A program made the position numbers and the translations under genes. The notes under the pieces are model-generated. The model searched no databases and had not been told where the DNA came from. It saw only the letters and a list, made by a program, of their open reading frames with translations. A stretch of DNA of 63,698 nt, the filler included, from Calcarisporiella thermophila CBS 279.70 (lineage: Eukaryota; Fungi; Calcarisporiellomycota), in the NCBI RefSeq assembly GCF_041956535.1. It is 6 parts of 6 records of this genome, joined end to end, with 100 filler letters (N's around TTAATTAATTAA, not from the genome) between each part and the next. Parts side by side here need not be neighbours in the genome. Positions count along the whole stretch, not along the records: positions 1 to 21,176 come from NW_027192242.1; 5 more parts are not named here. The stretch is one strand, 5' to 3'. Numbering within the stretch: position 1 is the stretch's first letter; the number at the start of each line of letters is the position of its first letter. Shown piece after piece: positions 670 through 37,174 of the stretch.

Positions 670-3600
670 CTATATTCTGCTGCTTTTCGTAGCTGCCTCT
701 ATAATATTTGATGCGAGAATTCTGACCATTTCATCTGATTGAGGAATGCTGTGACCATAACTGTGATTGACGATATAACTTAAACACGGGTCATAACGTT
801 GCAGAACCGCTAAATTATCTTTGTAGAATCTCTGATCTTTTGAGCTCATGCAGTGAATGGAAGAAATCGAAATTGGGCCGTTAAGTTTAGGATTTTTGAC
901 ATTACGAGGTAGCATAGCATATCTAAACGTTGGTTTGAATAATGTTGCGGAGAAGTGGATGCTAAAGCCCCACTGTCGCTGTATCTCTCCATTCACTGCC
1001 ATTCGATCAAGCAATTCTATGATAGCAGAACCTTGGCAGAATCCTAAGAGACCATCTACTCTTCCACCAATGTTAGAAATTTTGTTAAGTACATAACTTA
1101 TGGCAGTGTTAAGATGAGCTTGTCTTAGGAAGTAGCGTGGAATCCATTTAAAGAAAGGGCCGTCATAAAACTTTCTAATCTTTATAGTTTCTATAATTAT
1201 ACCAGAATAGGTTCAATAATCAATAACACAGTCAAGAAATATCAATTTGATACTAACCCATGAAGCTTGCTTTAACACATGCATCTAAATAAATAAAGTC
1301 AGCAACAGAACTAAGCGCATTTTCTAGTGGTCGCATCTTCAATTTCATTATCTCTTTGTTCATGGGTGAAGCGTGAAGACAAAGTATCTTGATTTTTTTT
1401 GTCAGAGGACGGATTGTGCGAGTAAAATTATTCGTTAATGTTATATTGGTGTTGAGAATTTCGTTAGAATTCTTCTCTGATCCGAGAATTGCAGGTGTAG
1501 AAGCCTTATATAATGCTCTAAGTGTGATATAAATTCCATGTTTACGAAGAGCGGATATTAATGCCATTGCTGTAATTGAATCACCTCCTAGAGCGAAAAA
1601 GGAAGTATGAAGATTGATCAGATTAGCATCTACTCCAAGCACTGATGCCATTGTTTCAATAACGAGACGCTGTCTATCAGTTGTTGGCTGCTCCGGCATA
1701 AATTCAAACTGAAGCAACATCTCCTTCAATTTGGTTTGGTCGGTCTTCCCGTTAGGTGTCATTGGGAAGTTGTCTAAAGCAATAATGCTGGCAGGAACCA
1801 TGTATTCAGGTAGATAGTCAAATAGCCAGTCTTTAAGAGCATTAACATTCACCTTTGCGGGCGTGACAAAACCATATAAGTTATTGTTGCGTACAAGTGC
1901 AACAGCAAACTCCACTGTCTCATATCGACTTATTGCATCAGTAATTTCTTCGAGCTCAACTCGGTATCCCTTCAACTTGACCTGATTGTCAACTCTCCCG
2001 CAGTACTCTAGTTCGCCTGATGAAAGCCAGCGCACAATATCACCGGAAGCATACATTCTGCTTCCAGGTTCACCAAATGGATCCTCGAGGAATTTCTCAG
2101 CAGTCAGCTCTGGTCTATTAAGATAGCCTTTTGCCACCCCGACTCCTCCAATATACAACTGACCCTTGACTCCAACTGGCACCGGTCGGAATTCACTATC
2201 GAGGACATATGCCCTCATATTAGGCAACACCCTTCCCATTGTGGGTGGCATTCCAGGCTGAAGTGGAGAAGAAAATGTGCAGAAAATGGATGTCTCTGTT
2301 GGTCCATAACGGTTGTAAAACACCGTCCTATTGCTCCATCGATCAATTAGACTCTGTGGACAAATTTCTCCGACTGGCATAATGACTTTGATGTTAGGGA
2401 ATTTCTCCGGGTTTAGATGTTGAAGTCCTGTCGGTGTCAGCGTTACAATTTCCACTTTTGAAATTGTTTCAAAAATATCGTCTCCTCGCAATATTAGTGT
2501 TGCTCCGTTAGAAAGCGCGCTGAAGATTTCCCCAACAGCAGCATCAAATGCAATTGACATGAATTGACCCATACGTATTCCATCCCCCAAATGATGACGC
2601 AAAGGCTGCATTATAATGTTGTTGGTTACACCTCTGTGGTGAACTAGGACTCCCTTTGGTTTGCCAGTGGTCCCCGAAGTAAAGCTATGATACACATGGG
2701 TGGGTGAATAAATTCATGAGTATCAAATGGTAAGGATACTTACGTAATATAGGCTAGATCTTCTCCAGTAGCCAAATCCTTTGGTTTACTTACATCGCCA
2801 TCTTTCCAATTATTATCTATCAGTAAGGATATATGTGAATGATCTTTTGGAACTGACTCCATGTCCCGTAAGGTTGTCAATATAATGGGGCCTGACACAT
2901 CATCCAGTATGGATTCAATGCGCTGACGGGGAAATGCAGCATCGATGGGAACAAATGCCCCTCCGGCCTTTAGGACTGCAAGAATCCCAACTACCATCTC
3001 GATTGATCGAGAGATAACCATCCCAACGTATCTCCCAGGATAAACCCCATGTCGACGCAAAACGTGCGCGAGTGAATTAGCCTGTGCATTGAGCTCTCCA
3101 TACGTGAGAGTCCTGTCACCTTCCTCAATGGCAGTGCTTTCAGATAGTATTTGAGCCATCTTTTCAAATCCGTGGTGAAGACACTCAAACGGGACCTCAC
3201 GACTTGGTCCTTTGCTGAAGGTTTCAAGCTGCCTGGTTTCTTGCATCGAGAGTCGATTGAGATCGTTGACCATTAAACTGCCTCTAGGGATGGTTTTTAT
3301 AACTTTGTGCACTGTTTCCTGATATTTGGATACTATACTTGACACAACTTGCTTATCGAATTGAGAACAATCATATTTGATGGTGCCAAGAATTGTGTGC
3401 TCTGCTGTTTTCAAAGTTATTCCTAGTGGATAACCAGTACTGCCAGGCTGATATATTTTGCATCGTTTGATTCCTTGGACTTTGAAATGCGTAGAAGATG
3501 ATGTTGATTCAAAATTATTATAGTTAAATAGTGTGGGAAACATCTCTCGTGTCCATGGAAAACCTGTCCAGCGCCGAATATCGGATAGTGATACCTGATC

Positions 3601-6600
3601 GTAAGGAAGGGAGTTCACGTGAAATTCCTGTATTGCAAGAAGAAGCTCATTAACTGTCATTGAATCCTTCAACACAATCCGGGTGGGAATAGTGTTGATA
3701 AGCGAACCAAGCACCCTAATGCAGGCAGTTTCGGTCAATTGTATAGCCAAAATAATAATTAAAAAAAAATAATACGCACCTTGTAATATCATGAACACCT
3801 CCGTCGCGCCCCATGACAACGCAGCCGAATATCACATCGTTGCATCGTGTATAATGACGTAGGGTCACAGCCCACATTGCTTTAAGAAAGTTGGCTGCGG
3901 TCACACCAAGAATTTGGCAATAAGACTGAATCTGTTCAGTTGTAGTATTTAGATCAAATGTATTGGTATGAAATCCCACCTCCTTGGGGCTTTTTCTTTT
4001 AATGATAATATCTAACTTGTCAGGAACCGTCGCTCCTTCAAATGCTGACCTCCAAAACTCCATTGCTTCACTCGTATTAATCGATAATATTGACTCGACA
4101 TGCGTCTTGAATTGAGGCCTAACTACTACCTCATCACCAAGATATGACCTAAACAGATCAGAAAAAAGCATTGGCTCCGACCAACCATCCACAATTAGGT
4201 GATGTAGCGTCCACAATAGGCGATATTGATTAGTTTCCTTAATACGTGCAATCGTGAATCGAACAAAGGTTGTGCTCTCCAAACTGAATCCGCGGGACCT
4301 CTCTTCAGCAAGGAAGTGCTCTTGTTGTTCGTCAGCTTCTGAAGTGGTCCATTCGATCGTGCACTCAAATGCTTTCGGTGCGTTTTTGAGGACAATTTGG
4401 AATATTCCCCCTTGAGTCGAAACAAAAACGGTTCGAAGAATGGTATTTGCATTCACAACTTTAGCCCAAGCAACTTGTAGGCGATCTAAGTCGAAATCGC
4501 AATCTATTTCATATACCGTTTGAAGCATATAAGATCCAGAGTCTTGTGAAAGTTGCGAGATAAAGCTTGTTTGAAGGGGAGTGGCAGGGTAAATGTCTTC
4601 AACCTCGCGCGGCGTAAGCTTCAAAATCGGTAGATATTCGTTTTCGATCTCTGCCAGAATAGTAGGATCTTTGATTAATGTAAAATCAAACACTGAGAGT
4701 GCGCCAGGAGTTTTCGGGTTGCAGCAATGATCTATAACCCTATGCATCGAGACTGTCCATTTTCTTCCCCAAGCTTCCAGTGTTTCCCTATGAAACAAAG
4801 ATGAGTTGAATCTGATTATTAGCTGGAGACAGTTTTCGGTATTGAACGAGTATTCAACTGCGATATTGCTATATACTTGGTCGTCGGAGTTAGAGTACAT
4901 ATTAAATTGTTTGTCGATCTCAAAAATGATTAACTCATTATTGACATCAAAAGGGATATCTGAGCGCTTGAAATATATTATTGTATTACGGTAACACTTT
5001 TCAGATTCGCCGTTTCCAATTGGTATTTCCGAAGTTGTGCTGAAGTTAGCATCGCTTCTTGGAGTTGATTGTAGGGCAGCTTTAATAGCCCTAATAATTG
5101 TGCTCAGATCATCTTCATTAGTCATGGAGAGACAAATGGGATGAAGGGTGGCGAACTGTCCCACTGTTCTTGAGATGTCGAATTGCTTGCCATTATATTT
5201 GCGATTCGAGTCCTCATAGATAACCGAGAGATGTCCCTGGCCCGTGGTCTCATGGAAACTAGTCAAAAGAGCCGCAAGGATCAGTTGATGGTCATTTGTT
5301 TTGTAAGTTTCATTAGCCTTTTTAAACGAAGCTGATACACTTGCATCGACCTCGTTTACCAGAACGCAAATTTCACTGGTTGCAACACTGATGGAAATGA
5401 ATTAAATTGAAGGATTAGGACTAAGTTTAACTGGCTATACAATTCGCGTTCAACTATTACCCGAAACTGTGTCGATTAGGAAGGATTCCCAAGCCAACTG
5501 ACTCAGCAGAGCATTGCCAATCATTAACGTGGCACGTTTGCTGTTTCATCCAGATTGCCCACTCGCGGAATGATGTAGTCCTCTCCTCAAGAATATATCC
5601 TCTCAGCAGACGATCGAGGTCTCTGAGGAGAATACTCCACGATAAAAGATCTACAGCAAGACTGTTAGCTGCGAAAAACATTTTCTGATCACCCTCTATC
5701 TGTAAAAAAATTTTAAGATTATATTTTATCACGGTTATAACTTAGTTCTGGAGGTGAAATCTCATCGAACATGTGCTTACTTCAAAGAGAGAGGCACAGT
5801 AAACGTGCCCTCCTGTTAAATCGCAAGAGGCTAGTTGCCTTACTTGTTCTCGAACTTCATCAGTATGCTCACAGTGGATGTGCCTAACATTCACTTCACG
5901 TGCACCATCTTCCAATACGGTCTGTCTCCAAATTCCATCACCATCCACGTAGAAGCGTGTCCGGAGCATATCGTGTTGCGCTACGATTTTTTCTATAGCT
6001 CTACAGAAATCTACAAAGTCTATATGCTCACGTGGTATAAGGAACCATCCATTGTCAAAACAGCAGGAGTGCAGTCTCGAAGCCTCTAAAAGCCGCTGTT
6101 GCAGTGAAGTCAGTGGAATTTCTCCAATAGCACCAGTTGCACTCGCGCCTAAATTTTCCGCCTCTTGAGCGATTTCAGCTAATCTTGCCGGGACCGCAGC
6201 CCTAAAAATCTGCTGTATGGTAATTTGTAAACCATGCTGACGAAATGCCGCGGCCAACGTCATTGCCGAAATTGAGTCACCACCAAGCGCAAAGAAAGAT
6301 GTATGGAGATTGATCAGGTTAGCATCCAAATTGAGTACCGATGCCATTATTTCTATGACTAGCCGCTGTTTATCCGTTGTCGGTTTCTCTGGTATAACCT
6401 CAAGATCACCTAGTGTATCTCTCAATTTGGACTTATTGGTCTTTCCATTCGGAGTCATGGGGAACTCTTTTAGTGCTACTACGGCGGCTGGTACCATGTA
6501 ATCAGGCAGGAAATTAAACAGCGAGATCCGGAGATCTTCAATATCCACATCGGCTGGTGTAACAAATCCAAACAAGATATTGTCGCGCACCACTGCAGTT

Positions 6601-9600
6601 GCAGACTCAACTCCCACATACCGTCTCATTGCAACCGCTATTTCCTCGAGCTCTATTCGGTATCCCTTCAGCTTGACCTGATCATCCACCCTCCCACAGA
6701 ACTCCAGCTCTCCCGAAGAAAGCCATCGCACAATATCTCCCGAGGCATACATTCTGCTCCCAGGCTCTGCAAATGGGTCCTCAATAAATTTCTCTGCAGT
6801 TAGCTCTGGTTGGTTGAGATATCCCAATGCTACTCCAACGCCACCTATGTACAGCTGACCCTTGACGCCGATGGGCACGGGTTGAAGCTCACTGTCGAGT
6901 ACATACGCTCTCATGTTTGGTAGCACGCTTCCCATTGTGGGCATCATGTTCGGCTTTAATGGCTGAGTACAAGTGCAAAAAATTGAAGCTTCTGTTGGTC
7001 CATAATCGATGTAAAAATTGACCTGTTCTCCCCATCTATCTATTAAAGCAGGTGGGCAAGCTTCTCCAATTGCGTCGATGATTTTGACATTTTTGTAATT
7101 TTTCGGATTAAGGTTAAGAAGGCCGGTTGGTGTCAATTTTACAATCTCGACTTTGGATAATGTTGACTCGATATTTGCTTCCCGCAAGACCAAGGTAGCA
7201 CCTTTTGATAACGTCATGAAAATATCGCCCACATATCCATCGAATGATAGAGACAGAAATGCACCAGCTCGAATTCCTGGTTTTAGCTGGGATGCAATAG
7301 GGTGCGTCAAAACGTTATTAATTACACCTCTGTGTCGAACCATGACTCCTTTTGGCTTTCCTGTTGTGCCAGAAGTAAAGCTACATAGAAATAATATCAA
7401 TAAGAAAGAGAAATGAATATTGAATGAAATGAAACTATTTACACAATGTAAGCGAGATCATCACCGGTGGCTAGCTCATTTGGTTTGTTGATATTTGCGC
7501 ATTTCTGTGTAAACTTGTCAATTAGAAATGCTGTAGAAAAATATGTCATTGGTACAGAAGTTTTGTCTCTAGAAGTTGTCAACAAAATATGGCTGTCGAT
7601 ATCATTCAAAATGGTCTTAATCCGATCTTGAGGGAATTCAGCATCAATTGGTACATATGCACCGCCAGCTTTAAGAACAGCTAGGATTCCAATTATCATC
7701 TCAATAGATTGCGAGACGACAAGCCCAATTTTAATTCCTGGGGCAACCCCTCGGTGTTGCAAAAAATGTGCAAGTGCATTAGCATGTTCATCCAGTTCTT
7801 TATACGTGATACTCCTATCACTATCCTCGACAGCAACCATTTCAGGTAATTGCCGCGCCATTTCTTCAAAACCGTGGTGTAAACATTCGTATGGAATTTT
7901 ATTCCTAGGACCTATACTGAACTTCTTAACCAACGCAGTTTCCTGCTCCGAGAGTTGATTCAAATCCCCAACCGTTAAGTTTTGTGCTGAGTTTATCCTT
8001 AGAGCTTCGTGTAGTACTGCTCGATATTTAGACATGATTCTTATTATAACTTGGATATCGAACAAGAATGCATTGTAGTTGACAGTAGAAAGGATTGTGC
8101 CTAAGTCGGGATGCAATACAACTCCTAGTGGATACTCTGTATTAATGGGCTGCTCAATATTGCATTTTTTGAATCTCTGGAACATATAACTCGTAGATAG
8201 TGAAAATATATCGAAATCAATATAATTAAGTATTGTTGGAAACATCACCTGCGTCCATGGGAGACCAGTCCAATGTCTAATATCAGAAAGTGAAGTCTGA
8301 GTGTAAGGAAGTGAGCTCAAATGGAACTCTTGCATTGTAAGGATGAGTTCTCTAATCGTCATTGAGTCCTTCAGCACAGTGCGAACCGGGATAGTGTTAA
8401 TGAGCGAACCGAGCATTCTATTGCGAGTAATATCTGTTATTTGCATGGGTTAAAATGTCCAATAAGCATAAAATATACCTTGAAGAATCTTCAGTGCCTC
8501 CTTCTCTCCCCAAAACAACGCAGCCAAATATCACATCATTGCAACGAGTATAGTGATAAAGGACCACAGCCCACATCGCTCGAAAAAAATTGGATACGGT
8601 TACTCCAAGTTTTTTGCAATATACCCGAATTTGATCAGTATCGACTTCCAAATCAAACGACATAGCACGAAAGCCTGCTCGCTCAGAAATACACGGTTTG
8701 TCCGCGATCTCTAGCTTGTCGGGAACAATCGCTCCTTCAAACACTGACTTCCAATACTTCATTGCTTCGGTGGTATTACTTGAAACTAATGACTCGATAT
8801 GTGCCTTGAAAGGTGGTCGGACCTCCACTATATCCCCAATATATGCTTTGTATAAATCATCAAAGAATAATTGGAAAGACCACCCATCCATAATTGAATG
8901 ATGCATTGTCCAGAGCAGTCGATACCGGCTCGTTTCCTTGATGTGAGCAACCGTAAGCCTCACAAATGACAGGCAATCTAAATTAAATCCCCGCCTGCGG
9001 TCTTCGGCTAAGAAAATCTCCTGCTCTTCGTCGATATCTGTCCACTCAATTATATTCACGTGTGCTTTAGGTAGATGCTTAAGGACGACCTGAAAAACGC
9101 CCTCCCGCGTAGAGACAAAGGCAGTACGAAGAATGGAGTTTGCACACACTATTTTAGCCCAAGCGTCTACCAAACGATCAAAGTCGAAATCATGCTCAAT
9201 CTCATATACAGATTGTATCAGATATGATCCAGTATCTTGCATGAGACGCGAGATAAAACTCATCTGCATTGGCGTGGCTGGATAAATGTCCTCCACGTCA
9301 CGTGGTTTTAGCCCCAAGGTTGGAAGATGTAAGATTTCAATCTCTTCTAGCAAGGAAGAGTCTTTCATTAGTGTGAAATCGGTGACCGAGAATACTCCAG
9401 GATTGCTCGGACTGCAACAATGATCTATAATCCTCTGCATCGAAGCCGCCCAGTTTTTTCCCCACAAATTCAGGATTCCCGCATGGAATAGTGATGGGTT
9501 GAAGTCCATCGTCAACTGGAGACATCTGTTAACATTAAAAGTATATTCGACAGTAATTGCACTAAATATCCTGCTTTTTTTACTGCAGCACTTGCTGTAT

Positions 9601-12600
9601 TGGTTGTCAAGCATAAGGAAGGATAGCTGTTCATTATCATTATAAGGGAATGCGGAGCGCCTGAAATAAATTGGCAGGTTATGGTAACCTTGATTGGTCT
9701 CTCCATTTTCACTTAGCAATGACGATGCCCAAGTCATGTCATAAAAGGTAGTTCCGTCGGATATAGCATGCAGAGCAGTTTTGATCCCATTAATAACCAT
9801 GCTAAGGTCATCCTCATAGGTAATGGATAGAGAGATGGGATGAAGAATGGAAAACTGCCCCACTGTCCTTGAGATATCGAGATGCTCGCCCTTAGGCTTG
9901 CGACTTGAATCTTCATAGATAACTGAGAGAAAACTTTTACCCGTGATCTCCTGGAAGCTAATCAAGAGAGCCGCTAGAATCAGATGATGATCTTTAGTTT
10001 TATAAGTGTCATTCGCCATTTTGAGGCAAGCTGATGTATCCGAGTCAAGTTCGCTTATGAGGATACAATTATCACCCGCTCTATCGCCGGAAGTGCTGAA
10101 AGGGAAGGTTATGGGGTTAGGGCATTGAAATACTATGTTAATAGTACGTAAACGTCTCTTACCTAGCGCCCTGATAATTGGTAAGAACTTTGAGATCAGA
10201 AAACTCAATAAATTGCTCCCTACTATTTAGCTCAACTGGCAACATCTGCTGCTCCATCCAGGTTGCCCATTCACGGAACGACGTTGTCTTCTTCTCAAGA
10301 GCGCGTCCACATAGCAGGCGATCAAAATCCTCAAGTAGAATATGCCATGAAACTATATCAACCGCAAGACAGTGCGCTGCGAAATACAACTTCTGCTCGC
10401 TACCAATCTGTAACGTGTTCAAAGGTTATATTTCGCCATGATTAGAGCATTAGTTGGAATTGAAGGCCAATCCATCATATGGTTACCTCGAAAAGAGCAG
10501 CGCAATAAACATGCTCTCCTACAATATCGTGAGGAGCTAACCGCCTTACATGCTCCCAAACCTCGCTGTCATGTTCACATAAGATGTGGCTAACATTTGC
10601 TTTATGTTTTGTAGTTTCCAATACGGTTTGCCTCCAGTTGCCATCGTTATCCTTGTAGAAGCGTGTCCGAAGCATATCATGGTGGTTAACGAGGGAAGTA
10701 ATTGCTTGGTTGAAACTACCAAAATCAATGAACTCTCGTGGGGTAAAAAAATACCCCTGATCGAAATGGTGGTGGTAAGCCCGCTTTGAGCCAAGGAGCC
10801 AGCTCTGCATGGGATTTAAGCAGATATTTGCTAGCGAAGGAGCTACGTGAGTTTCTCTATTGTTCTTCTGTCTTACAATAGCTGCTAGTTGAGCAAGAGT
10901 AGGTGCCTTTAAAACTTGTGCAATATTGACAATAAGTCCATGCTTCCTGAAAACGGATACTAGAGTAATTGCCGAGATGGAATCGCCTCCAAGGGCGAAA
11001 AAAGACGAGTTAAAATCAAGCATATCGACATCGATCTTGAGGACCGTCGCTATAAGTTTAATGATAAGCTTTTGCTTCTCGGTGACGGGAAGATGTTGTC
11101 CTGTATTTTTTTGAAGAGGAAGCATTTTCAATTTCTGCTTGTCAACCTTTCCATTGGCCGTTATAGGGAATGTTTCGAGGGCTATTATTGTTGCTGGAAC
11201 CATATAATCTGGCAAGAAATCAAAAAGCGAATTTCGCACAGCTTCTACATCCACTTCAGCTGGCGTAACAAACCCAAACAATGTGCTATCTTTGACAAGA
11301 GCTACAGCTAATTCAACACCTGGATATGCATTAATGACTGTCGCTACCTCGCCAAGCTCTACTCGATATCCCATCAACTTAATCTGGTCGTCTGTTCGTC
11401 CAAGAATCTCCAGATTTCCATCCAAATTCCATCTGACCAAGTCACCGGTTCTGTACATCCTAGTTCCAAGTCTGAAGGGATTATCAATGAAGCGCTCAGC
11501 GGTGAATTCGGGTTGATTGATATATCCCTTAGTCACACCTGGTCCAGTAATATAAAGCTCTCCGGTAACTCCAATTGGAACTATTTTCAGGTTGTGATCC
11601 AACACGTAGTATGACATGTTATTGATAGGTCGACCAACGCCGATTCTTACCCCTTTTTTGAGTTCTTGAGCACTAGTGATGATGCTTGTTTCAGTTGGGC
11701 CATATGCATTAAACATCCTCGCATAGGGTAACCATGTGTCTACTAGTGTTTGTGGGACTGGTTCACCAGCAACGTATATAACCTGAAGGTTTGGGGCATC
11801 CTCTGGTTTAATATGCTGTAACCCAGTAGGTGTAATAAGTAGTGCCTGCGTATCTTCAAGCGATGCGATTACATTTTCGTCAGATCGAAGCAACAACGTT
11901 CCACCATGAGTGAAGCATGTGAATATTTCTCCGACCGCGCCGTCAAAACCTACCGACATGAACTGTAATTGTAATATCCCAGGGCCTGAGCCGTTAGTGG
12001 TCATAATATCCTGAACACAATTCATCGCACCACCGTGGTGAATTGGTACTCCCTTTGGTTTACCAGTTGTTCCAGAGGTGTATACAATTATAGCAGTATC
12101 ACCACTTGATGACAAATCATCGGGTTTTGAAACTTCCTCTAGATTTGATAGCATGAATTCATCTAAAGTTATGAGCTCTCTATTCTCGAATACAAAGACT
12201 GTGGAAGCTACGGATTGTATTGTAACAATGGCTATGCAGGCGGCATCGTCCAAAATGTAATTAATGCGATCCACTGGAAAAGCGGCATTAATTGGAACAT
12301 ATGCACCACCCGCCTTGAGGATACCAAGAATACCAATAATCATCTCAATTGACCGATTAATGACAAGACCAACATTACATCCTGGTTTAATATACATTTT
12401 CCTCAACACACTAGCAAGAGCATTAGCGCGATAGTCAAGCTCATAATAAGTCATTGTTTTTCCCGAAGGATCGATGATCGCAGAGACATTCGGTTGATTA
12501 ACAGCATAATACTCGAATCCATGGTGAAGACATGGATAAATCAATGGTCTAGCATCACCGGAGCAGATGTTGTCAAGAAACAATGCGTCAGAGGAGGATA

Positions 12601-15600
12601 AGACATTTAAACCCAATAATGTTGGGGTAGCAGTAACCGGCGATGTTAAGATTGTGAATGCCACTTCTTTGAATTTTGTTATCATCCTATCAGCGGTATT
12701 GGGTTCAATCATGGTTGTGTTGATTAAAGCGCTCAGATTTAATAATTTGTCAGATGATGCGATAGTTACAATCAGAGGATATTCACTTCCTTCATAGTGA
12801 TCGACCTTCGTTAAACGAAATTCACATTTCATGTTAACCAAATCACTGAGTGGTGAGGGAGTGCTTTGATATGATATGACCGTTGGGAACATTCCCTGTG
12901 TCCACGGAAATTCAGTCCAACGTTTGATATCGCTTAGTGGAACATGGCTATAGGGAAGTGAAGCCACATGATACTCCTGAATTGCCAAAAGAAGCTCATT
13001 GACCGTCATAGAATCCTTCAACACGGCTCGGACTGGAATAGTGTTGATGAGCATCCCGATCATACTATTTTTCAAGAAAAATGAATATACAGCTTTAATC
13101 TACTAAACACTGGTCCATTGAGTCGGATGCAACTATCCTTACCTTGTAACATTGTCGATACTTTCATCGCGACCCATAACCACGCTTCCAAAGATTACGT
13201 CGTCACTTCGAGTGTAATGACGTAGTACGATAGCCCATAGAGCTCTGCAAAAATTTGATATAGTAACACCAAGTCCCATACAATAATGGTGAAGTCGTTC
13301 CATTGGGATATCAAGCTTATAAGTTCGCGATAATACGCCTCTATCTTTAGAGCAAGTATTTACATGGGAAATATTAATTTTCTCAGGAGGAGTAGCCCCA
13401 TCGAACACTGATTTCCAATACGCTTTTGCCTCTTCAACATTAGTCGAAAGGACAGTTTCAACATGCAACTTGAATGGCGGACGGATTTCCGGTTTGAATC
13501 CGGAATACACTTTTATCACTTCGCTCAAAAGGATAGTGTCAGACCATCCATCAATAATAGAATGATGCATAGCCCAGAAGAGACGATATCGATTGGTTTG
13601 TTTTATTCGCACTATTGTGAACCTGGCGAAACTAATACTATCTAATCGGAAGCCAAGAGTGCGATCAGCAACAAGCATATTTTCTTGCATCTTGTCAACC
13701 TCGTCTATTGTCCATTCAATTGTTTCTTTGAATACTCTCGGTGAGTTTTTGAGCACAATCTGGTATACGCCCTTCCCAGTGGTGACAAATGCTGTGCGAA
13801 GGATGGGATTAGCCGCTGCTACTTGATACCATGCTGACTGCAGGCGATACTCATCAAATGATCCCTCAATTTCATACACCGATTGCACCATATACGCCTG
13901 TGGATTTTGTGCAAGAGCCGAGATGAAACTTGCCTGTAGAGGTGTTGCGGGATAGATATCCTCCACTTCGCGCGGCGTGATATTTAGTATACGTAAATGA
14001 TCTGCTTCGATCTCATTAACTAAGTTGGGATCTGATAAAAGTGTAAAATCGTGATTTGAAAATCCGCCAGGAGTGCGTTGATCACAGCAATGATCGATGA
14101 GAGATTCCATCGTCTCTGTCCACCTTTGACACCATAACTCTAGGATTCCGCCATGGAAAATGGAAGAATTAAATTTGAAAATTAACTCCAATCGCCCATC
14201 CATATCAAAGTAGCACTCGATCGAAACTTCACGAAACACCTCATTTTCATTTTCATCGCCTATATAGCTCCCGCCACACTTAAAAAAAGCTGTATCTTTC
14301 TCAAAATTGTGAAAGTGACCGTAATAGTTGAAATATATCGGTGTCATCTCATGTTCTTTAATCAACTTGTTGTCCGGTGTGAAGGGTGCCAAATATTTAA
14401 TTGCGCCATAGGATAGACCTTTCTCAGGAACTGTTCTCAATGTTTCTTTTACATTCTGAATAGTGCCAGCAAAGTCATTTGGGCTTTTCAGAGACAACAC
14501 AATTGGGTATATTGTTGTAAACCAACCGATTGTTCTTGATACGTCTAATGTGGAATTCCAAGGTTCACGCCCATGTCCCTCAAGATAAAATACCAGGTCT
14601 GTTCTTCCAGTGATAGCTTGGAAGCTCAACCAAAGTGCAGTCAAAATTAGATCCTGGTTATTTGTTCTATAAGTACTGTTTGCTCTATCTAACTTGCTTG
14701 AGGCGATACGACCGATTTTCCTTTTTAGTATCCGATTGTCAATGCTTTTAGCTCTAAAAAAGGGACTGGGATTAACGTTCACATGTAAATTTGTATATCA
14801 ATAAGAATAAAATTACTCTACGCTGTCCTGAATGGTAAGAAAATGCATATCCACGGTAATAATATTCCGCGCCCATTTAATGGGATCAAAAATTTTTGCT
14901 CCTTGCAGTTGAGAGACTGCCCATTCTTGGAACGAGTTTGTTTTTTGCTCCAAGGATCCACCCTTCAGTAAACATTCGAGATCTTCTAAAAGTACTCGCC
15001 AAGAAACGAGATCGACAACCAGATGATGGATTTTGAACAATATTCTCTGCTCATGACCGAACTATGGAAAAGGTATTATAATGGATAAAATACTAATTTC
15101 AAAATTTAATATATAGTTGAATCATTCTTACTTCAAAAAGTGCGGCACAGTATAATAAGCCTTTTTCAATGTCGAAAGAAGAAGAGAGTATTTTAACACG
15201 CTCTGCAAACTGCTTTTCACTCTTACAAAGAACATAGTGAATATTCGACTTGCAATAATTTGGTTCCCGAATTGACTGTCTCCATTCATTATCTTTATTT
15301 CTAGTGTAATACGCTCTAAGCATATCGTGATGCTCCACAATTTTTGTGATAGATTGTGTGAAACTTGTAAAATCAATACGTTCTTGAGGAAGGAGTATCC
15401 AACCTTGGTTGAAATGGTTGAGGTAGAATCTCCTCGACTTAAAGAACCAATGTTGAACCGGTGTTAATGGAACATCTCCCACCACAATACTCGGATTACG
15501 CGTAGATTCATCTTGCTTTTCTTGTAAGATTGGGGCCAGTTTACCAGGTGTGGGATATTTGAATATCTCTGACACAGATACGGAAAGGCCATGTCTTCGG

Positions 15601-18266
15601 AAGGCTGATACAAGTGTAATGGCAGATATAGAGTCACCACCTAGTTCAAAGAAAGTAGTTTGGAGATTGATCAGGCTGGCATCTACATTAAGTACCGATG
15701 CCATTGTCTCTATAATTAGCCGCTCCCTATCTGTTGTAGGCTGCACTGGTGCAATTTTGAACTGACTTGCCATTTCTATCAGTTTAGACTTGTCGGTCTT
15801 TCCATTCGATGTCATTGGGAAATCGTCCAAAGAAAAAATGCTGGCTGGGATCATATATTCGGGCAGGTAGTCGAACAGCCAATCTCTAACGGCATCAATA
15901 TCCACATTGGCAGGCGTAACAAAGCTATACAAAGTATTTTCCCGCACCACCGCAACTGCTGACTCAACCCCCACATACCGGCGTATGGCAACTGCTACTT
16001 CTTCAAGCTCTACTCGGTATCCCTTCAGCTTGACCTGGTCATCGCCTCGCCCACAGAACTCCAGCTCACCTGAAGAAAGCCAGCGTACAACGTCACCTGA
16101 GGCGTATATTCTGCTACCGGGCTCTGCAAAGGGATCTTCTATGAACTTCTCAGCTGTCATATCTGGTTGGTTGAGATAGCCAAGTGCTACCCCGACGCCA
16201 CCGATGTACAGCTGACCCTTGACTCCAATGGGAACCGGTCTAAGTTCACTGTCAAGCACATACGCTCTCATGTTGGGTAAGACACTTCCAATGGTGGGAA
16301 CCATGCTTGGCTTTAGAGCGTGCGTGCAGGTGCAATGTATTGAAGCTTCTGTCGGTCCATAATCGATGTAAAAATTGGCTTGCTTCCCCCATCGATCTAC
16401 TAAAGTGGGTGGGCAAACTTCTCCAACTGCGTTGATAACTTTGATGTTTTTAAAGTCATTCGGATTAAGTTTAAGCAGCCCAGTTGGAGTTAATTTTACA
16501 ACATCGACTTTTGATAACGTCGATTTTATATTTTCTCCCCTCAAGACTAGAGTGGCACCCTTGGATAACGTCATGAAGATATCTGCCACACATGCATCGA
16601 ATGATACAGCCATAAATCCTCCAACACGAACTCCTGGTTTCAGATGAGATGTGATGGGATGAACTAAAACATTATTAACTACACTCTTGTGTTGAACCAT
16701 GACTCCTTTTGGTTTTCCAGTTGTGCCAGACGTAAAACTATATAGAAAAATGATCAATGAGAAATATCGACGATATAATATATTATAAATATCATAATTA
16801 CATAATATAGGCCAAATCTTCCCTTGTAGCTAATTCCTTTGGCTTGTTCACCTCAATTTGTTTCCCATCATAACCATTAATAAGTATGGTTTTATGCGAA
16901 TACTGCTCTGGAACCGACCCCACATCCCGTAAAGTTGACAATAAAACGGGACCTAGTACATCGTCTAAAATGGATGTGATGCGGTGACGGGGAAATCCAG
17001 CATCAATGGGAACATAAGCGCCTCCAGCCTTAAGGATGGCGAGGACCCCAACTATCATTTCAATGGATCGTGAAATGACAAGCCCAACGTAAACCCCTGG
17101 AACAACCCCTTGTCGTCGCAGGAAATGTGCTAGCACATTGGCCTGTGCATCCAGCTGCATGTAGCTAATTTGCTTGTCACCCTCCTCAATTGCGATGCTT
17201 TGTGGGGTCTTTCTAACTTGTGCTTCGAACCCGTTGTGCAGACATTCAAAGCGAATTTTTCGGACTTCCCCGAGGCAAAAACGATTTAATAATACCTTTT
17301 CCTGTGCAGAGAGTTGGTTTAGTTGATATAACCGTGGTAAGTTATACATCGGACTGTACAATATTATCTTCAATGTATCTTCAAATTTTGACATCATTCC
17401 GTCAACAATTTCACGCCCGATCTCTTCAAGATTGAACGAGATATTTGCATAGATTGAGTTGCTTCCATCAGATAACACTTTTATGCCTAAAGGATACCCC
17501 ATTGATTTGAATTCGTATCTTATATTTGCCATATAACTAGAACTATTGTCATTAACTATTGTGGGCGCTTCCGAGGTCAGATGTTGATACGAGAAAAAAG
17601 TCTGTAATCTTCCCCGAGCCCATTGAGGGCTGGTCCAACTTCTAATATCAGAATATGACACATGGCAATGTGGAAGCGCCGCACTGTGGAAATCTTGAAC
17701 AGCCTGGAAAAGCTCCCGTAGTTCCATCGAGTCGTTTAATACAAGCCGAATCGGTATCATATCGAGGAGTGCTCCGAATATCCTGAATGGTTAGGTTCGA
17801 GAAGGTCATTCTACCAGAATCTTTCAAAGCGTCTATCTTAAAAGCATATTTTTCAATCTGTACTGTACCTGGCATCGTGGTCCTCTTTACCATGTTCCGC
17901 GATGAAACAAGTAAAGATTACAACATCCCACCGTGTATAATGTCGCAAAACAATTGCCCAGATGACTTTTAAAAAGTTTGGCACCGTCACTTTAGAGCTT
18001 TTACAAAATGTCAAAATTTGATCAAACTGCAATTCTAGCTTGAAATCCAGTTCTTTTGTCCGAGCGACTTGTTTAGATGTGTTAGAGGCATCCACAAAAC
18101 TCCATATATTATCTCCTCTCTTAGGATTGACGGATCCTTCGAAGATCGATACCCAAAACTCTCTGGCCGCGTCAACACGTTCATTATGGAGTAAAGCTGA
18201 AGTTGCCCTTGCACCTTGACAAGAATCTGGGTATTTTCTTACTTCCTCCACTCGATAATGTGTCAT
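670..18266 (-). CDS. Tetramodular nonribosomal peptide synthetase, about 5540 aa, 15 exons: half-C-A-T-E / C-A-T-E(degenerate) / C-A-T-E(degenerate) / C-A-T-FSH1-like hydrolase
   Basis: Four A domains ([19 protein letters not shown].QxK, NGK), four T domains (GGDSI), three intact C domains (HHSIIDG, HHSIMDG, HHLIVDG) and three E-like domains. Fourteen GT-AG introns traced by hand: 17783-17868, 16738-16801, 15062-15131, 14754-14816, 13065-13142, 10408-10486, 10096-10162, 8418-8478, 7381-7442, 5700-5780, 5388-5460, 3716-3779, 2685-2743, 1191-1257. Removing them gives one open frame of 16623 nt. The start ATG at 18266 is a best guess. Confidence 0.93.
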
Positions 18267-18534: not shown

Positions 18535-18786
18535 CCTTACAAAATCCGCCCGGTGAAATCAGCTAAGTTACGCATAGAAGCGTGAAGAAAGGATGGAGAA
18601 CGTTCGTGATTCCTTAAATTTTTACAAACCTTTCATATACTTTTCACAATTTTAAAAATGGAAGAGGAGGTTACAATTTAGAGTGTTACTGTAAAAAATT
18701 TATGAGGAATCGTGAACGTTCTCCATCCTTTCTTCACGCTTCTATGCGTAACCTAGCTGATTTCACCGGGCGAATTTTTTGTAGGG
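18535..18786. mobile_element. MITE-like element with about 90-bp terminal inverted repeats
   Basis: 18535-18626 and 18690-18786 are near-perfect inverted repeats; termini are CCTTACAAAA and TTTTTGTAGGG. Confidence 0.75.
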
Positions 18787-19560
18787 ATTTTTTGGGACTA
18801 AGCTATTTCTACTTCGAAACTACTATAGTTACACTAGAAATTCTCACCATGTGAATTGATTAAGTTTGTTATGAGATTATATAATACGAAGTTGATAAGA
18901 GCTTGATAAGCTAGGTGAACCCAAATTTTATTTCGAAAGATTTAGAGTTATTTCACTTCACGAAATTGAGAAATACAGATTGGATGTGCTAGAAATTATC
19001 ATCAAAACATCAAATAGATGCATTTATGCTTTGCCCAATGAGGGTTAGAACAGGATACACAGCATGCATGGGTTAGTAGTGTAGAGGGTTTCTCTGCTGA
19101 AGCAAAGCATAAATGGCATAATGGGCCAGGCAAAACCTGCAGTCAACGCTCAGGTCAGCTTATTGGATTAAAATTATATGGAAAACAAAAAATAAAAAAA
19201 ATGATGTATTGCGATATGGAAAACAACCCTGAGGAAATCACTGGGTTGCCTCAGAACAATGCACGAAATTCAAAATTCAGAAAAAAAGCTAAATTCAGTG
19301 TAACTCCAACAGAGGAAGAAGTTAAGTCGGACTACAAATTCTGCCTAATTTATTTCACGTAAAGTCACTAGGCTTAAGCAAAGATAAAACTTTGATATGA
19401 TTTCAGATTTTTATTCCACTTGTGACCATTTGGGTATAATAACATGGTATATTGGGATATTGAAATAAAATAAATATATTTCTCCACACTCTCAAGTTAG
19501 CCCTACAAAGTATAGAAAAATGTAGAAAACAAGGAGAACCTGGAACTTTTATTTCATTTT

Positions 19561-19965
19561 TCCCTTTGGGCGAGAGCCCAAGGGAAATGAAGCTGGATGA
19601 TATCGGCCCTTCGGAGCCCAAATCGTGCTTTATTTGTAGTAAGATAAAATATCGATAAAACATTGATAAAACATAAATAACAATATCGATAAAAATTTTA
19701 GCTTTTTTTCAATACACATAAAAGCAAAATAGAAAAGTAGAAAAACAATGTAAACATATAAAATGCCATTTACTTCAAATTCCATCCTTAGCTTTGAGAA
19801 GTTTCCTGAAGTCGTGTCTCTCGTCGCATGGGTGTGGTGGGTAGGCATCCAGCTTCATTTCCCTTGGGCTCTCGCCCAAAGGGAATTAACCTTCACTAGT
19901 TCGGCCAATGCCCTTTAGGCTTTGTGCCCAAGCTTCATTCGCTGGATGGTGTTTCGTCGCTGGAT
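19561..19965 (-). mobile_element. 3' part of a DIRS-like element (internal complementary region plus right terminus), no YR ORF seen
   Basis: Its reverse complement aligns with about 60369-60740. An internal inverted repeat pairs 19561-19598 with about 19847-19884. Confidence 0.75.
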
Positions 19966-20169
19966 TACTTCTCAGTGTTCCGCTTATCCTGTTGAGTCAA
20001 ATATTGGTCTAATAAGGTTCTATCCAGCAATCCCTTAGCTATCCCTAAGCTCTCGATTGCTCCTTCCCAAACACTTCAGAAGACTAGTAAACGACACAAG
20101 ATGGTGGTAGTGTAATCGGATTTATCCTAACTAAACAGCACACATTTATTGTAAACTAAAGATATAACC

Positions 20170-21135
20170 TGCTCACTCGAGTTCGTCCAAAGAAGCCTCT
20201 TCTTACAGTATCACATCATCGAAGGCGCCTGGAGTTTGCAAAGAAGCATCTTCATTGGACTGAAGAAGATTGGAACCAAGTAATATTTTCTGATGAAACG
20301 AAAATAATACTCGCGAATGAGGGAGGCAAACAATCCTATTACAAGTACAAGGGCGAACCTCTTCGTAGCCGTCATATCCAACCTACTCTAAAACACGGGG
20401 GTGATTACTTGATGGCGTGGGGCTGTACTACGGCACATGGAGTTGGGTACCTCTGTCGAATCAACGAAGGGCTCAATGCTCAACTTTATTGTAAGATTCT
20501 CAGTGAAGAATATAGATGGACTTTGGAATATTATGGGGTCGACAAGTCGGAAGTGATTTTCCAACATGATAATGACCCCAAGCATACAGCTAATATCACT
20601 AAAGCCTGGCTTCAAGACAACAAGCTACAGGTACTAGAGTGGCCTTCGCAGTCTCCCGATCTCAATATCATGGAGCACATGTGGAGTGAATTAAAGCGAA
20701 GACTTGCCAATTATCGCAGAATGCCCATGAACAAAGATGAGTTATGGGAACGAATTGAAACAGAGTGGGAAAGCATCGATAAAGAATACATCGGAAAACT
20801 CTACGAAAGCATGCCGGAGAGGATACGCGCTGTATGCTTCGCTAAAGGAGGGCACACAAAGTATTAGCTAGGAAAAGAGAAAATAATGATCGATCAAAAT
20901 AGTAGCTATATTGTAAGATATTGAATTATGTAGAAATGCACTTTTTATAACTTCAACTTCCCAGAGCGCGAGCCCTTGTTTGTTAAACAGGGCATGCACA
21001 TATCCCTACAAAAAGTGTAGGCTCTGCAGTTTTTTATAATAACTTTCTCACTCTAATTTTATAAGGAGATGATGAAACATTTGGCGTCCAAGGAGATGTG
21101 GCTTGGGTATTCCTCCAATTTCGGACGGGGCTGTA
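20170..21135 (+). mobile_element. 5'-truncated Tc1-like DDE transposon
   Basis: Open frame KKPLL..RLEFAKKHLHWT..WNQVIFSDE..FQHDNDPKH..WPSQSPDLNIMEH..GGHTKY, stop at 20867. Candidate right TIR ends GGACGGGGCTG followed by TA at 21134-21135. Confidence 0.85.
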
Positions 21136-21836: not shown

Positions 21837-23508
<1,672 letters not shown>

Positions 23509-24103
23509 TAGCGCGTGGGCCCGTTGGCCGAAATCTGTTGTTGGACTCGCAATATCCCCTCGTATTATCTAATTTCGTTTACCCAGCATATCCGATTTTG
23601 TGGGATTTCAATTGCTTATTAAAAAGGAAATATACTAAAACTCCAGATCGGCCTTGTTAGAATGGCGACTGATGAATGATGAGGAACTTGCGGGCTGCTT
23701 GTGTATCGGGTGTCCCTTGCTGTACCCCTGCAGCAAGGAGGCCCCCCCACAGTCCAGGCCTGGCTCTACTGTGGCCTGGCTATAGGTTTACCAGTTAAAC
23801 TCTGTGTCGCACCTGTTGAATCATTGCTAAGTGAACTTAATCTAGAACTGCTGCGCCCATTTGTTCACAAATGTTAAAAAAAAATTGAATTTGATTCAAA
23901 AAAAAAAGGAGCAAAAAAAGAAGGGAGCTACAATTCATTATCTTTTTATTACAATTATTGATTTTTTTTTCCCTCCCCTGTTTATCTACGACATAATAGC
24001 GACTCTCTTTTGTTTGATGAATTAAAAGAGCTGCCAAAACCACTCTTCCGTCTTCTGTTTTTCCTTTATCATTAGCGTGATTGGAAGTCCATTCCAATAC
24101 ATA

Positions 24104-28971: not shown

Positions 28972-31095
28972 TCAGTTCTTATCTAGTGTGAATACCGGGC
29001 GCACATCGACGGGCACTCCCTTGAGTGCATCCAAGATTCGCTCCAAATCTTCGTCTATCTTGCCATACTGCTCCACAAATTGCTGCACCTTCCCCTTATC
29101 GCCATTGCCTTGCAGTACAAGGATATCATGGGTAAGATCTCGGACTGCGTCTTCAATCTTGTCAAAATCAACTGAATATCGACCAGTTGCGTCAAGATGG
29201 AAGCCCCCTTTAGCGAGGAGATAGTTAAACTGGATGGCAACCCCGAGCCCATGTGCTTCCCCAATACCGAATCGCATACTATGAATTCAAAGAAGGAGGA
29301 GGGAAGGGGAGAGGAGAGGAGAGGAGGGGCGGATAGCCGTATCAATATAAGCTGTTATGTTTAAAAAGAAAATCGCATTTTGAAAACCAACCTCCTGAAC
29401 GCTGATGCTAAGAATGTGACCCAGAATTGCTCCCGCGTGATATCAGAAATGGTGCCCTGCTTGATCAAAAGATTGGCCGCAAATAATCCGGTGATATCAG
29501 CCTTGGCCTCTTCCATGGCGGAATGGAACTCTTGCAGTCTAGCACGCACGGGCACCGGGTGATCGCCCACAGTATAATGTGGCCCATTGGAGTGCGCCAC
29601 CTCATGTAGGAGAACGTGTGTGAAAAAGGCCTCAAAGGACAAGTGGGCGGCCACCTGGTTCTCATCGACCGCCACCTCTGAAATGGGAATGAGCACTTTA
29701 TTATACTTGGCCTTTTGCACGTTTTTGATGAGGACCAGCTTGGATCCGCCTTTGGCAATGGCATCCTCGTCATTTGGGAGGTTATAGGCTGCGGTCATCG
29801 GTACAGCAACTATAGAAGTCATCCAAGATCCTTAGAGCTAGAGTACACATAAAAAAAAAGCTGCCTTAGGCCAAATTACCATCTCCCCCATTATACACCT
29901 CGTTGACAACCACGATGGGAGGCTTCGTCAGGTGCCTATTCTTGTATTCCTCTGGGACAGGCAGGTGGCTAGATTAGAGAGAATCGAAAATAAGCACACC
30001 ATGGTAATGTGACATAAAGCGTGGTTTCTCTCTCAACATGCCTCTCCACGTATTCTAGGCTTGACGCAAACTTTTCCAGTAATGAAGACGAAGGGAAATC
30101 TCGTAGCATCAAATAGAACTCATATGCGGACTTGGACGAGAAAAGCTTATCGGTGTACACCTAATACCGCCCAGAGTTTGTGTAAATGTTAAAAATGCAA
30201 GCAAATAACCGGCGTCTTCAACCCAGATCTATACCTCGTAAGGACCACAGGTTATATCGATGGGTGATTTTGGACTAATGCGCAGCCAGTCCAACTCCGA
30301 AGGGAGATAATCATTGGAGCGAAAAGCGTCGGCACGCGAGTTCAAAAAAGACCTGAGCGAAGCGTCCTCTACCAGGTCCGCAGCCTCCTTCAGTAGGTTT
30401 GCAGCGGGTTCTAAAAGGTCTGCATACTCCTTGGAGTAAGGTGACTGTAGAGGAGTAGACAACTGTGAGAATAGGGATGGGGGGCTAGCGATTGCTAGAA
30501 TTCTCTAACACACCAAGTAAAGTTGCCCTTGTTCATTGCGCTTCACAACATGATAAAAGCCTGTTGCGTGCTTTCGCTCAATTTCCGAGAGCGTCTTGGT
30601 CCATGCTTCAAACTCGGCTTTTGTCATGTCTTCCGGGTAGAAGTTTCCGCCCGGGGGAGGGTGGTTCGGCACCCCCTCAATCCAAGCTTCCTCGCCGGCG
30701 ACTCGATCCCATGGGCCCTACAACCGCCCAAGAGCCGGAATGAAAAAGCGGGCCCGCTTCAAGTGGGCAAATGAGGGCCTTACCTTGCAGAGCTCAAACA
30801 TGAGCAATTTATCCTGATCTCCTTCTTTTTTCAGGCGCTCCAATAAAGCTTCATTACCAGACCATGCCTGCCTAATATATAGCTGGTCAAGGAGCTTGCC
30901 GACCCGCACAAGCTTTGTCAGAGCAAGTTTGTCGTTGGGGGTGAGATGCGAAAAATCGGCCTCAAGCGTTGCAGGCTCGAACTTTTTGATTCGATCTTGT
31001 AGCGATGACATGGGTGAATTATGTCTTGAGGTTGACAAGAATGTTCTTGACAGGGGAATACGAACTGTATTACGGGTAAAGACACGAGAAAGCAT
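28972..31095 (-). CDS. M49 (DPP III-like) zinc peptidase of the HEXXH type with a mitochondrial-type presequence (multi-exon)
   Basis: GPWDR, GGNFYP, GPYEVYTD, AAYNLPNDE, KGGSKLVLIKNV, HEVAH, EEAKAD, RFGIGEAHG. Confidence 0.85.
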
Positions 31096-32148
31096 CAAAA
31101 TGGGCTGGCAGCTCTGCGCCTCCAATTTTGTGTGAAATTTAGGTGTGAATCATCCAATATGCTTTTGCTAATGGGATGAGTATACCTGGTACACAGAATT
31201 GGGACTATTAAGGGAGACGAGCGGCTAAGTTAGGGTTATTAGGCATTTCGCAATGAAAGCCGGAGAGCCGCTTTTCCTGGGCCTCTTTCCACTGAACGAG
31301 ACTATGTACGGTATTCGATCATAGGCTATGAACCTTGCTCTCAAGGTGTCACTCTTTGGATAGAGGGTCAAATTCGGGTTCCCTCACCGGTCAAGACGGG
31401 CCCAAGAGAATGGGCTGCCAAAAATCCCATCCTAGAATAACGTACCAGGAAGTCTGAATGGCGACTATATTCAATCGTAGATTGAAATCGGAGTCACTTT
31501 TTTTCCTTCACAGCACGTAAACAAAACACCGGATAATATCACCACCCCCTTAACAATGCCACCCTTTAGGCAAGCAGGCTAACCTCATGGACCAGTCTGC
31601 TATTTTTCTGGTTTAGATGATCTTGAATTCTTCGTTTCTAGGAAGGTTGAGTTTCTAGCGGAATTGCGTGCTTGTCCGACCTCTGAACGGGTGCTGCAGT
31701 AGCTTCCATTGCGCAACACCTCGAGTGAGAAGGGGAGGGTACGGTGTGGAAGAGCGCGACGTCCATAGGATGTCGACCGGTCAGAGTGGCCCAGCCGCCT
31801 TCTAGGAGCTCGGTGCGCTCCATGCGGTATATCTGCCTCTTATACAGACTCGGGATGAAATTAGAATTAGCGGTTCGGGTCGGAGTTCGGAACACCACCA
31901 AACTCCTTTAACAAATCCGTATTTCATGAAGAGGAAATCGAGGGAGACATTGGAACACAACTCTTCCAACCACACCCATTCCACATACGCAATAACTACT
32001 CATAATTTTTATTTACATTATTTATATTTCAGCAGCAGCAGTAGCAGCAGTAGCAAAAAAAGTTCCGTCCGTCCTCAGTTCTCTCCCCCTCTCTCTTCTT
32101 CATAACCAAGTTAATTGCTTTTTTTTTATCCCGTGTTTCGGCTTTGTG

Positions 32149-34639: not shown

Positions 34640-35937
34640 GGCAGCCCGCTTCCCCCTTCCCCCTCCTCCTTTCCCCACTCGAACATCCTTCACTTCGCAT
34701 TCGCGTTTTTCTCTTGACATGGTTTTGTGAGGACTTTTGATTTATTTTATCTTTTGCTCTCCTAATGTAAGTTGTATTCGCCTCGTTTTTCTCCTTATGA
34801 CTATTATTTATTTGTAATTGCCTTTTGTGCCGGAATAAAATAACCTCTTTTCAAGAGTTTTGCCGCGTGGGGTTTGAAGGTTTCCTTGCATCGGAGTTAT
34901 TTGGGGTGTTCTGTGACATCAAGGGATTCATATGACGTTCTGCCGGTTATTATGGATTGGGCGGCGTTGTAAGAGGGGCTCCAACTCTACCCCTAGTGAG
35001 AGGATCCAAAGAGCCCATCTTGTAACAGCCAGCAGATAAGATCGTGGCCCCCCGTTCTTGGGCCCCACCGGCTGTATACTGCCCTCCGTAAAAGAAGTCC
35101 TTGCCCTGCCGTATCGTACCATAGGAAACAGAACTTGTGGCTTGTGGGTGGGGAGCAGCCATTACCATGGGGGAAGGGTTAGCCAGCTGAGCGGTCTGAG
35201 ACGATGTGAGATAGGGGAGGATGCCACCAATATCAAGTGAGAGTCACGGCCCCTCGGCTGTGGAGGGAAACAGATAATTTTCCCCGAGGCCTGGTGCCCT
35301 AAGATCATGACACCTGGCCTCTGTGCGAGCTTGCCCTCGCCTGCCAGACCCCCCTCTCCCCCCCGGCCAAGGCCAGAATGCGATTAGGCAAGGTTTCATG
35401 AATCGACCACCATCGATCGGATATAAAGAGAGAGGGTTCCTCCCACGAAAAATAGGTTTCTCAAATTCTCCCCCCAATCTGGTCCAATCAGCCGAAGTGA
35501 ATCCGTATTTAACAGCTCAGCCTTCCAAAGGTGTGCCGCCTGCTTCTCTTCCACGATACCACTCTCTCGATCCCTTCTTGGCTTGCTAAGTGAAGTGGGA
35601 TGTTTTTCCACCATTGAGTCACTCCATCGTCACAGCTTGAAGGCCTTTTCTCACCCCGCCTCCCCCTTTTCTGAACTCTCTATGAAAGATTTCCATCCGA
35701 TCCTGCGCTATCCTCCCTCGATTTCCGCTCTCTGGGCCTCTCTATCCGTTCTATTCTCTGCGTTTTACTTTGCCGGCGAGCAGGTTGACGGAGGCTAATT
35801 TTCTCTCTCGGCCGCTCCACTCCATTGATGCTTTAGTGTGTTCCCGATTGTGCCGCTTAGTTTGCTTTCATCATCATTTCATCATTATTCCGCCCGCCGC
35901 GATTGCTTTTGCTTGGCCCCTTTAATTCCCCTCCGAT

Positions 35938-36543: not shown

Positions 36544-36850
36544 CTACATGAAGGAGCTCGTGGGACCGGCTGGCTGCGGATGGCCCATTCTTCTTGTGTT
36601 AATAAAGTCAAGTGTGTTTACCCCATCTGGAACATTCTAGTTCGAGAAACAAAGTTGGTTGTGCCACCCAATTTGACCTGTGCACAAACTACGCCGTTTT
36701 CACCTGAAATTCATTTGTAGTCTTTGGGGGGGCGAGACGAGTTGGATGGGTTCAAGCGGGAGGGGAGCAGAACCAATTTATTTTGAGCTGGCCATGAAGC
36801 AGGCTGGAGATGAAGAGAGAGGAGGGTATAACGATATAGCGTTTATCTGA

Positions 36851-36853
<3 letters not shown>

Positions 36854-36887
<34 letters not shown>

Positions 36888-37130: not shown

Positions 37131-37167
<37 letters not shown>
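36854..37167. repeat. (GA)n microsatellites either side of an assembly gap
   Basis: GA runs at about 36854-36882 and 37131-37167. Confidence 0.9.

Positions 37168-37174
<7 letters not shown>

Follow-up and report, generated by a model that had tools for sequence, protein, structure and literature searches.

The NRPS encoded by VTP21DRAFT_9675 of the early-diverging fungus Calcarisporiella thermophila (XP_069245482.1, here P0124; 5540 aa, four modules) ends A4-T4-FSH1, and its terminal domain is a cysteine variant of the FSH1/OVCA2 family. Sequence, predicted fold and analogy with known systems indicate that this domain is probably the in-cis product-release domain of the synthetase, equivalent to a thioesterase (TE) domain but drawn from the FSH1/OVCA2 hydrolases and not from the TE family. 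The window analysed is a stretch of 63,698 nucleotides joined from six records of the assembly of strain CBS 279.70 (GCF_041956535.1), and positions below count along it unless a contig is named. An earlier note on this DNA had proposed a fused hydrolase with a Cys nucleophile at the end of the NRPS.

Gene structure and domain organization

The gene, including its TAG stop codon (672-670), occupies 670..18266 on the minus strand, as defined by Pfam domain calls and the public gene model. P0124 aligns exactly to 15 minus-strand exons, from 18266 to 673, with GT/AG at the edges of all 14 introns. The domain order is half-C, A1-T1-E1, C-A2-T2-E2, C-A3-T3-E3, C-A4-T4, FSH1. All three full C domains keep HHxxxDG. 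The HHxxxD and EGHGRE motifs are intact in E1 and gone from the degenerate E2 and E3. The expected product, judged from this order, would be a tetrapeptide that contains no more than one D-residue. Read against GrsA, the A4 specificity code is DAGTMVRIF, which is unlike the bacterial Ser, Thr and Dap codes, but codes of this kind are poor predictors for these fungi.

The T4 carrier domain (1490..1666, minus strand; Pfam match) bears its phosphopantetheine site at Ser5261 (codon TCA, 1579-1577, minus strand), 66 residues before the CLH motif of FSH1. The fusion in cis described in the earlier note is thus directly after the last carrier. A Pfam scan of the whole protein found no release domain other than FSH1. 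As the earlier note held, FSH1 occupies the place usually taken by a TE, a terminal C or an R domain.

At its start the NRPS has a C domain reduced to the C-terminal lobe, without HHxxxD (17868-18266, minus strand). A C-domain C-terminal lobe lacking HHxxxD also opens the paralogue on contig C37 (~23060-23900), and both starts are possibly structural or docking remnants. Truncation of the gene start by an upstream transposon was considered and rejected, since a missing C-domain exon was looked for upstream and not found and C37 has the same half-C start; for the same reasons the gene is probably complete.

Several repeats surround the gene. An inverted repeat whose 83-nt arms are 90% complementary lies upstream of the start codon (18541-18778), followed by a MITE-like element of 326 nt (19560-19885), which has many copies in the genome and perfect terminal inverted repeats of 40 nt, and a Tc1/mariner-type transposase fragment (DDE_3, HTH_Tnp_Tc3_2; 20160-20864, plus strand). 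Just past the stop is a 75-nt MITE-like piece (569-643), and a similar piece lies just past the stop of the C37 paralogue (C37:10913-10988). A solo-LTR-like repeat of 144 nt with TG...CA ends (53-196; many genomic copies, 80-100% identity) recurs, by its first part, at the far end of the contig (21155-21176).

Family assignment of the terminal domain

The FSH1 domain is divided between two exons. The first contributes the first strands and the oxyanion loop (1258..1396, minus strand) and matches positions 2-47 of the Pfam FSH1 profile (E 1.1e-5); the second contributes all three triad residues and the stop (670..1190, minus strand) and matches positions 81-208 (E 3.2e-10). Searched separately, each exon passes the PF03959 cut-off, and the spliced domain in P0124 matches at E 6.3e-17 and 62.4 bits, the gathering cut-off being 21. 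The joined sequence used for folding was that of the public protein, P0124. The intron between the two exons (1257..1191, minus strand; 67 nt, GT-AG, phase 1) joins both frames in phase. Its predicted splicing, put forward in the earlier note, is supported by conserved position and by the public gene model: a phase-1 intron lies 5-6 codons past the DAC motif in four paralogues, and the independent NCBI model XP_069245482.1 makes the same splice and reads GFCQG. The intronless fifth paralogue, C37, is collinear with the spliced form of the domain.

The putative nucleophile, Cys5419 of GFCQG, is encoded by TGC at 1038-1036 on the minus strand, as read earlier, and aligns with Ser110 of yeast Fsh1. 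The mechanical ORF 670..1014 starts after this codon and indeed misses the central motif. Where the G-x-S-x-G motif of PF03959 has Ser in 93/93 free members, the domain here has GFCQG. A further difference is in the oxyanion loop, where the His-Gly motif has become His-Ala (Ala5330, 1372-1370, minus strand) in VTP21DRAFT_9675 only among intact members; Gly is present in four paralogues, read from the full-length alignment or from exon 1, and in all 93 free FSH1s.

No thioesterase family, PF00975 included, was matched by the FSH1 exons or by P0124 in Pfam searches, and a genome-wide PF00975 search did not have the FSH1 locus of VTP21DRAFT_9675 among its matches. Comparison with the genome's own canonical TE, on contig C30, showed no meaningful similarity (best BLASTP E 0.56). 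A canonical TE identity was rejected on these results and on the fold, and the earlier assignment to the FSH1 family holds. Exon 2 alone gave no homologues by word search and no PDB sequence match; a profile built from the paralogues was needed. A length-limited search with a profile returned only free FSH1s, as expected.

Predicted fold and active site

The AlphaFold model of the domain, an alpha/beta hydrolase with a compact fold like that of Fsh1, is confident (pLDDT 95.4, pTM 0.92). In it, Cys5419 is placed at the strand-helix elbow, Asp5486 (codon GAT, 837-835, minus strand) after the fifth strand (beta7, position II) and His5514 of GHSIP (codon CAC, 753-751, minus strand) after the last strand, beta8. 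Profile alignment to yeast Fsh1 (1YCD) likewise puts the three residues on the Fsh1 triad, and alignment and model together support the placement of the Cys-Asp-His triad predicted in the earlier note, with Asp5486 as the acid and His5514 as the base. Both are invariant across the six genome paralogues. An Asp at position II is the default of FSH1 and no special feature.

The top structural match of the model was 1YCD (Foldseek E 2.4e-10; Z 23.4 over 212 aligned residues; next match 18.8). Carboxylesterases and acyl-protein thioesterases came next at Z ~18, and the best biosynthetic thioesterases among the matches listed were TesA (Z 16.4) and ClbQ (Z 15.4). An ESM Atlas feature search agrees with the Fsh1-like assignment. 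Yeast Fsh1 and human OVCA2 share fold and triad layout with the domain, which is ~18% identical to 1YCD, but they are free-standing esterases with an invariant Ser (93/93), and the NRPS-fused members form a separate clade. In Fsh1 itself the cap is small and the pocket shallow (PMC7077851). A model of the T4-FSH1 didomain (pTM 0.73; rmsd ~18 A to the SulM and EntF T-TE structures) gave no productive docking of T4 on the active site and does not discriminate between the readings weighed below.

FSH1-ended NRPSs in other genomes

We searched 1.84 billion representative proteins with the profile, and the top matches were C-terminal domains of large NRPSs and NRPS fragments. About 30 fused relatives were found in other genomes, nearly all with Ser. 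At least 11 genera of chytrids have FSH1-ended NRPSs: Thoreauomyces, Batrachochytrium (both species), Globomyces, Quaeritorhiza, Geranomyces, Spizellomyces, Chytriomyces, Phlyctochytrium, Zopfochytrium, Terramyces and Polyrhizophydium. FSH1 comes straight after a T domain in 24 of the 34 outside proteins mapped; in six more, an A domain is followed by FSH1 and the T is below the HMM threshold. The earlier note had asked whether Cys or Ser is conserved in such fusions: most members have Ser, and Cys is found in three C. thermophila paralogues. Of 39 aligned rows, 33 carry Ser as the nucleophile, four carry Cys and two have lost it. Triad residues are lost in some chytrid members, and the triad acid is often Glu in this group.

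The fused FSH1 domains form one clade apart from free FSH1/OVCA2 (support 100/98) in a careful 42-row tree, from which P0156, P0210 and P0213 had been left out as long or doubtful. A quick tree of 132 rows gave the fused clade an SH-aLRT of 97, with two exceptions. On the best reading of these alignments and trees, the VTP21DRAFT_9675 domain would belong to an ancient clade of T-FSH1 termini common to chytrid NRPSs and Calcarisporiella. The domains of Calcarisporiella, which is not a chytrid, nest in the chytrid-dominated clade beside a Thoreauomyces sequence (98/91), a hint of either transfer or deep ancestry with losses. Elsewhere in the survey, the Globomyces model P0125 has T-FSH1 twice within one protein, and the metagenome contig L043 has two NRPS-linked FSH1 domains in tandem, adjoining ABC transporter genes.

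Paralogues and the history of the cysteine

In the 28.2-Mb C. thermophila assembly, six NRPSs end A-T(-T)-FSH1, with Cys on contigs C52 (VTP21DRAFT_9675), C25 and C2 and with Ser on C6, C3 and C37; FSH1 lies directly after T near the C-terminus in all six. The genome also carries one free canonical FSH1, and a frameshifted seventh FSH1 remnant (C2, 1439790-1440260) sits after an E domain. The C3 paralogue has an in-frame TGA inside an A domain (315718-315722). The terminal A codes are DGSMIVGLG for C25 (Cys) and DGSITVGLG and DGAITVGLG for C3 and C6 (both Ser); the last A domain of C37 contains N stretches and was excluded from this reading. Canonical T-TE and R-domain genes coexist with the FSH1-ended ones. 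One of them, a multi-module NRPS with a canonical T-TE end (C30, ~29600-48700), is intron-poor, and the FSH1-ended group is intron-rich.

Compared with the paralogues, the FSH1 domain of VTP21DRAFT_9675 has a pS of 0.72-0.81, which is saturated, and a pN of 0.34-0.40. It is under purifying selection, with dN far below dS. Because synonymous sites are saturated at such a pN, the Cys appears to be old and retained, whichever of the histories below is followed.

The history of the Cys was analysed on a tree with the nucleophile column masked. A single recent origin was rejected, the three Cys copies as one clade giving an AU p of 0.0098. The VTP21DRAFT_9675 domain is basal within the six-member Calcarisporiella group, with weak support (87/67). 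The Ser codon is TCN in all eight cases checked, seven fused domains from outside and the genome's free FSH1. Within the Calcarisporiella group, Ser is encoded by AGT twice and by AGC once, and Cys always by TGC. Changing TCN to AGY takes more than one step, and TGC is one step from either. With TCN in the outgroups and AGY in the local Ser copies, the simplest history would therefore be that Ser (TCY) became Cys where the Calcarisporiella expansion began and that Cys later reverted twice to Ser (AGY). Passage through Thr, or descent from AGY with Cys gained three times, would be an alternative, less simple history. A fourth Cys, in the metagenomic member P0142 (TGT), has an independent origin. 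Sequencing error as the source of the Cys was rejected, as TGC is present in three independent copies.

Relation to known systems

LovG, which we take to be an FSH-type hydrolase, acts as a separate protein. It releases the chain from LovB (PMC8374128), and MrPigG, a free FSH-family protein, has been proposed to take acyl chains off the ACPs of a fungal PKS cluster (PMC7558996). Such trans-acting FSH-type hydrolases, namely MrPigG, AfoC and DbaE, share the family and are tied to carrier off-loading (PMC7558996, PMC5635595, PMC8374128), but they are separate proteins that work on polyketide ACPs in Dikarya, whereas the FSH1 domain here is in cis on an NRPS. Within megasynthases, FSH1 domains have been noted in dinoflagellate ZmaK-like PKS/NRPS, where they are uncharacterised (PMC8283056), and in bacterial SdlR, whose fused FSH1 is described as inactive (PMC7619045). 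Both resemble the present case in having FSH1 within a megasynthase and differ in their PKS-type context, and the inactive SdlR domain would, by analogy, count against a release role.

Cys-TEs are functional release enzymes (PMC6668435, PMC11298585, PMC13288461), and one of them, MacB-TE, performs ordinary macrocyclisation (PMC13288461). ObiF1, SulM and MacB/PmxB lie after T and have a Cys-His-Asp triad like that of VTP21DRAFT_9675, with the Asp at position II in ObiF1 and SulM. They are, however, bacterial classical TEs (PF00975) with a helical lid, and the Gln-Cys-Asn motif is missing from VTP21DRAFT_9675.

The T-FSH1 fusion is already known in outline. Bushley and Turgeon (2010) listed a T-C-T-A-T-FSH1 protein of B. 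dendrobatidis, BDEG_03514.1, as a domain call only (PMC2823734), giving no function, family survey or Cys variant. This protein is likely to be our B. dendrobatidis P0141 (its cluster includes JEL423 BDEG_23494), which has the T-C-T-A-T-FSH1 layout and falls in the same clade as the VTP21DRAFT_9675 domain. Both have FSH1 after the last T; P0141 differs in having Ser (TCT) and one module. A literature search covering few subscription journals found neither a biochemical study nor a family survey of FSH1 termini, and no Cys variant. The novelty claimed in the earlier note is weakened, since the T-FSH1 ending is widespread in chytrid NRPSs and was noted in silico for B. dendrobatidis (PMC2823734). 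How broad the family is, and that it switches between Cys and Ser, seems not to have been reported.

Proposed release role and alternatives

In the proposed mechanism, His5514 and Asp5486 would activate Cys5419, which would take the finished tetrapeptide off the phosphopantetheine of T4 Ser5261 by transthioesterification. Water could then resolve the acyl-S-enzyme to a linear peptide, or an internal amine or hydroxyl could close it to a cyclic one. The evidence gathered here covers the fusion and its position, the lack of another release domain, the predicted fold with its triad, the breadth of the family and the selection on the domain. Catalysis is inferred from the precedent of Cys-TEs and from FSH-family proteins tied to carrier off-loading, and the product and the choice between hydrolysis and cyclisation are putative. 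The position after the last T supports a TE-like way of working, not membership in PF00975. The same end-domain closes the NRPSs of at least 11 chytrid genera, and for that reason it is probably an overlooked release enzyme of chytrid NRPSs in general. The His-Ala oxyanion change and the triad losses in some chytrid members speak against a release role.

The Cys itself is best read as a tolerated or cyclisation-favouring variant of the usual Ser. It could instead confer a chemistry of its own, its reactive acyl-thioester driving strained closure (a cyclic tetrapeptide, a beta-lactone or a lactam) beyond what the Ser versions do. Cys with a position-II Asp is the configuration of ObiF1 and SulM (PMC11298585), changing Cys to Ser abolishes cyclisation in MacB-TE and ObiF1 (PMC13288461, PMC6668435), and the Cys has been kept in three paralogues despite saturated synonymous divergence and gained independently in P0142. 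With four modules, of which one has an intact E domain, the expected tetrapeptide would carry a single D-residue, which could aid formation of a cyclic tetrapeptide. Yet an Asp at that position is the FSH1 default, Phe-Cys-Gln stands in place of the Gln-Cys-Asn of SulM, the Cys copy C25 and the Ser copies C3 and C6 have near-identical terminal A codes, and Cys has apparently reverted to Ser twice. The A4 code is moreover not of the Ser, Thr or Dap type, a point that weighs little in fungi, as the codes compared are bacterial. We consider such Cys-specific chemistry unlikely. These points, and the ordinary macrocycles made by MacB-TE, leave beta-lactone or beta-lactam release unsupported; of the unusual chemistry proposed in the earlier note, a cyclisation-biased release may still apply.

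The His-Ala change also makes it possible that the domain is decaying or non-catalytic, a pseudo-enzyme or proofreader, any product being released non-enzymatically or in trans. Its branch is the longest of the six paralogues (0.68), E2 and E3 have lost their catalytic motifs, mobile elements flank the gene, and NRPS decay is seen in the genome in the frameshifted remnant on C2 and the in-frame TGA on C3. Degenerate E domains are, however, common in active NRPSs, and the 5540-aa ORF is intact, with canonical introns, a complete triad, a confidently predicted fold and dN far below dS, which makes decay improbable. An assembly or annotation artefact, either in the Cys or in the fusion, could be suspected from the short contig (21 kb) with repeats at both ends. 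It is scarcely credible given TGC Cys codons in three paralogues on three contigs, the conserved intron position, the collinear intronless paralogue and the ~30 fused relatives in other genomes.

The preferred reading, in-cis release by the FSH1 terminus, can be extended. FSH1 termini would then be an uncharacterised in-cis release class, and the Calcarisporiella Cys a Ser/Cys switch from hydrolysis to ring closure, for example to a strained cyclic tetrapeptide. We regard this extension as speculative and rather doubtful.

Implications

Reviews of fungal NRPS release list R domains, terminal C domains and a small number of TE domains (PMC2823734). FSH1 termini include those of NRPSs from both amphibian-pathogenic Batrachochytrium species. 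If FSH1 release is true, it would account for product off-loading across an entire lineage of unexplored fungal NRPSs, and mining tools could call such NRPS genes complete. The three Cys and the three Ser paralogues of this culturable fungus form a natural experiment on the effect of a Cys nucleophile. Should the Ser/Cys switch prove true, they would provide naturally matched pairs of Ser and Cys paralogues, together with a peptide-cyclase scaffold that is new and not related to classical TEs.
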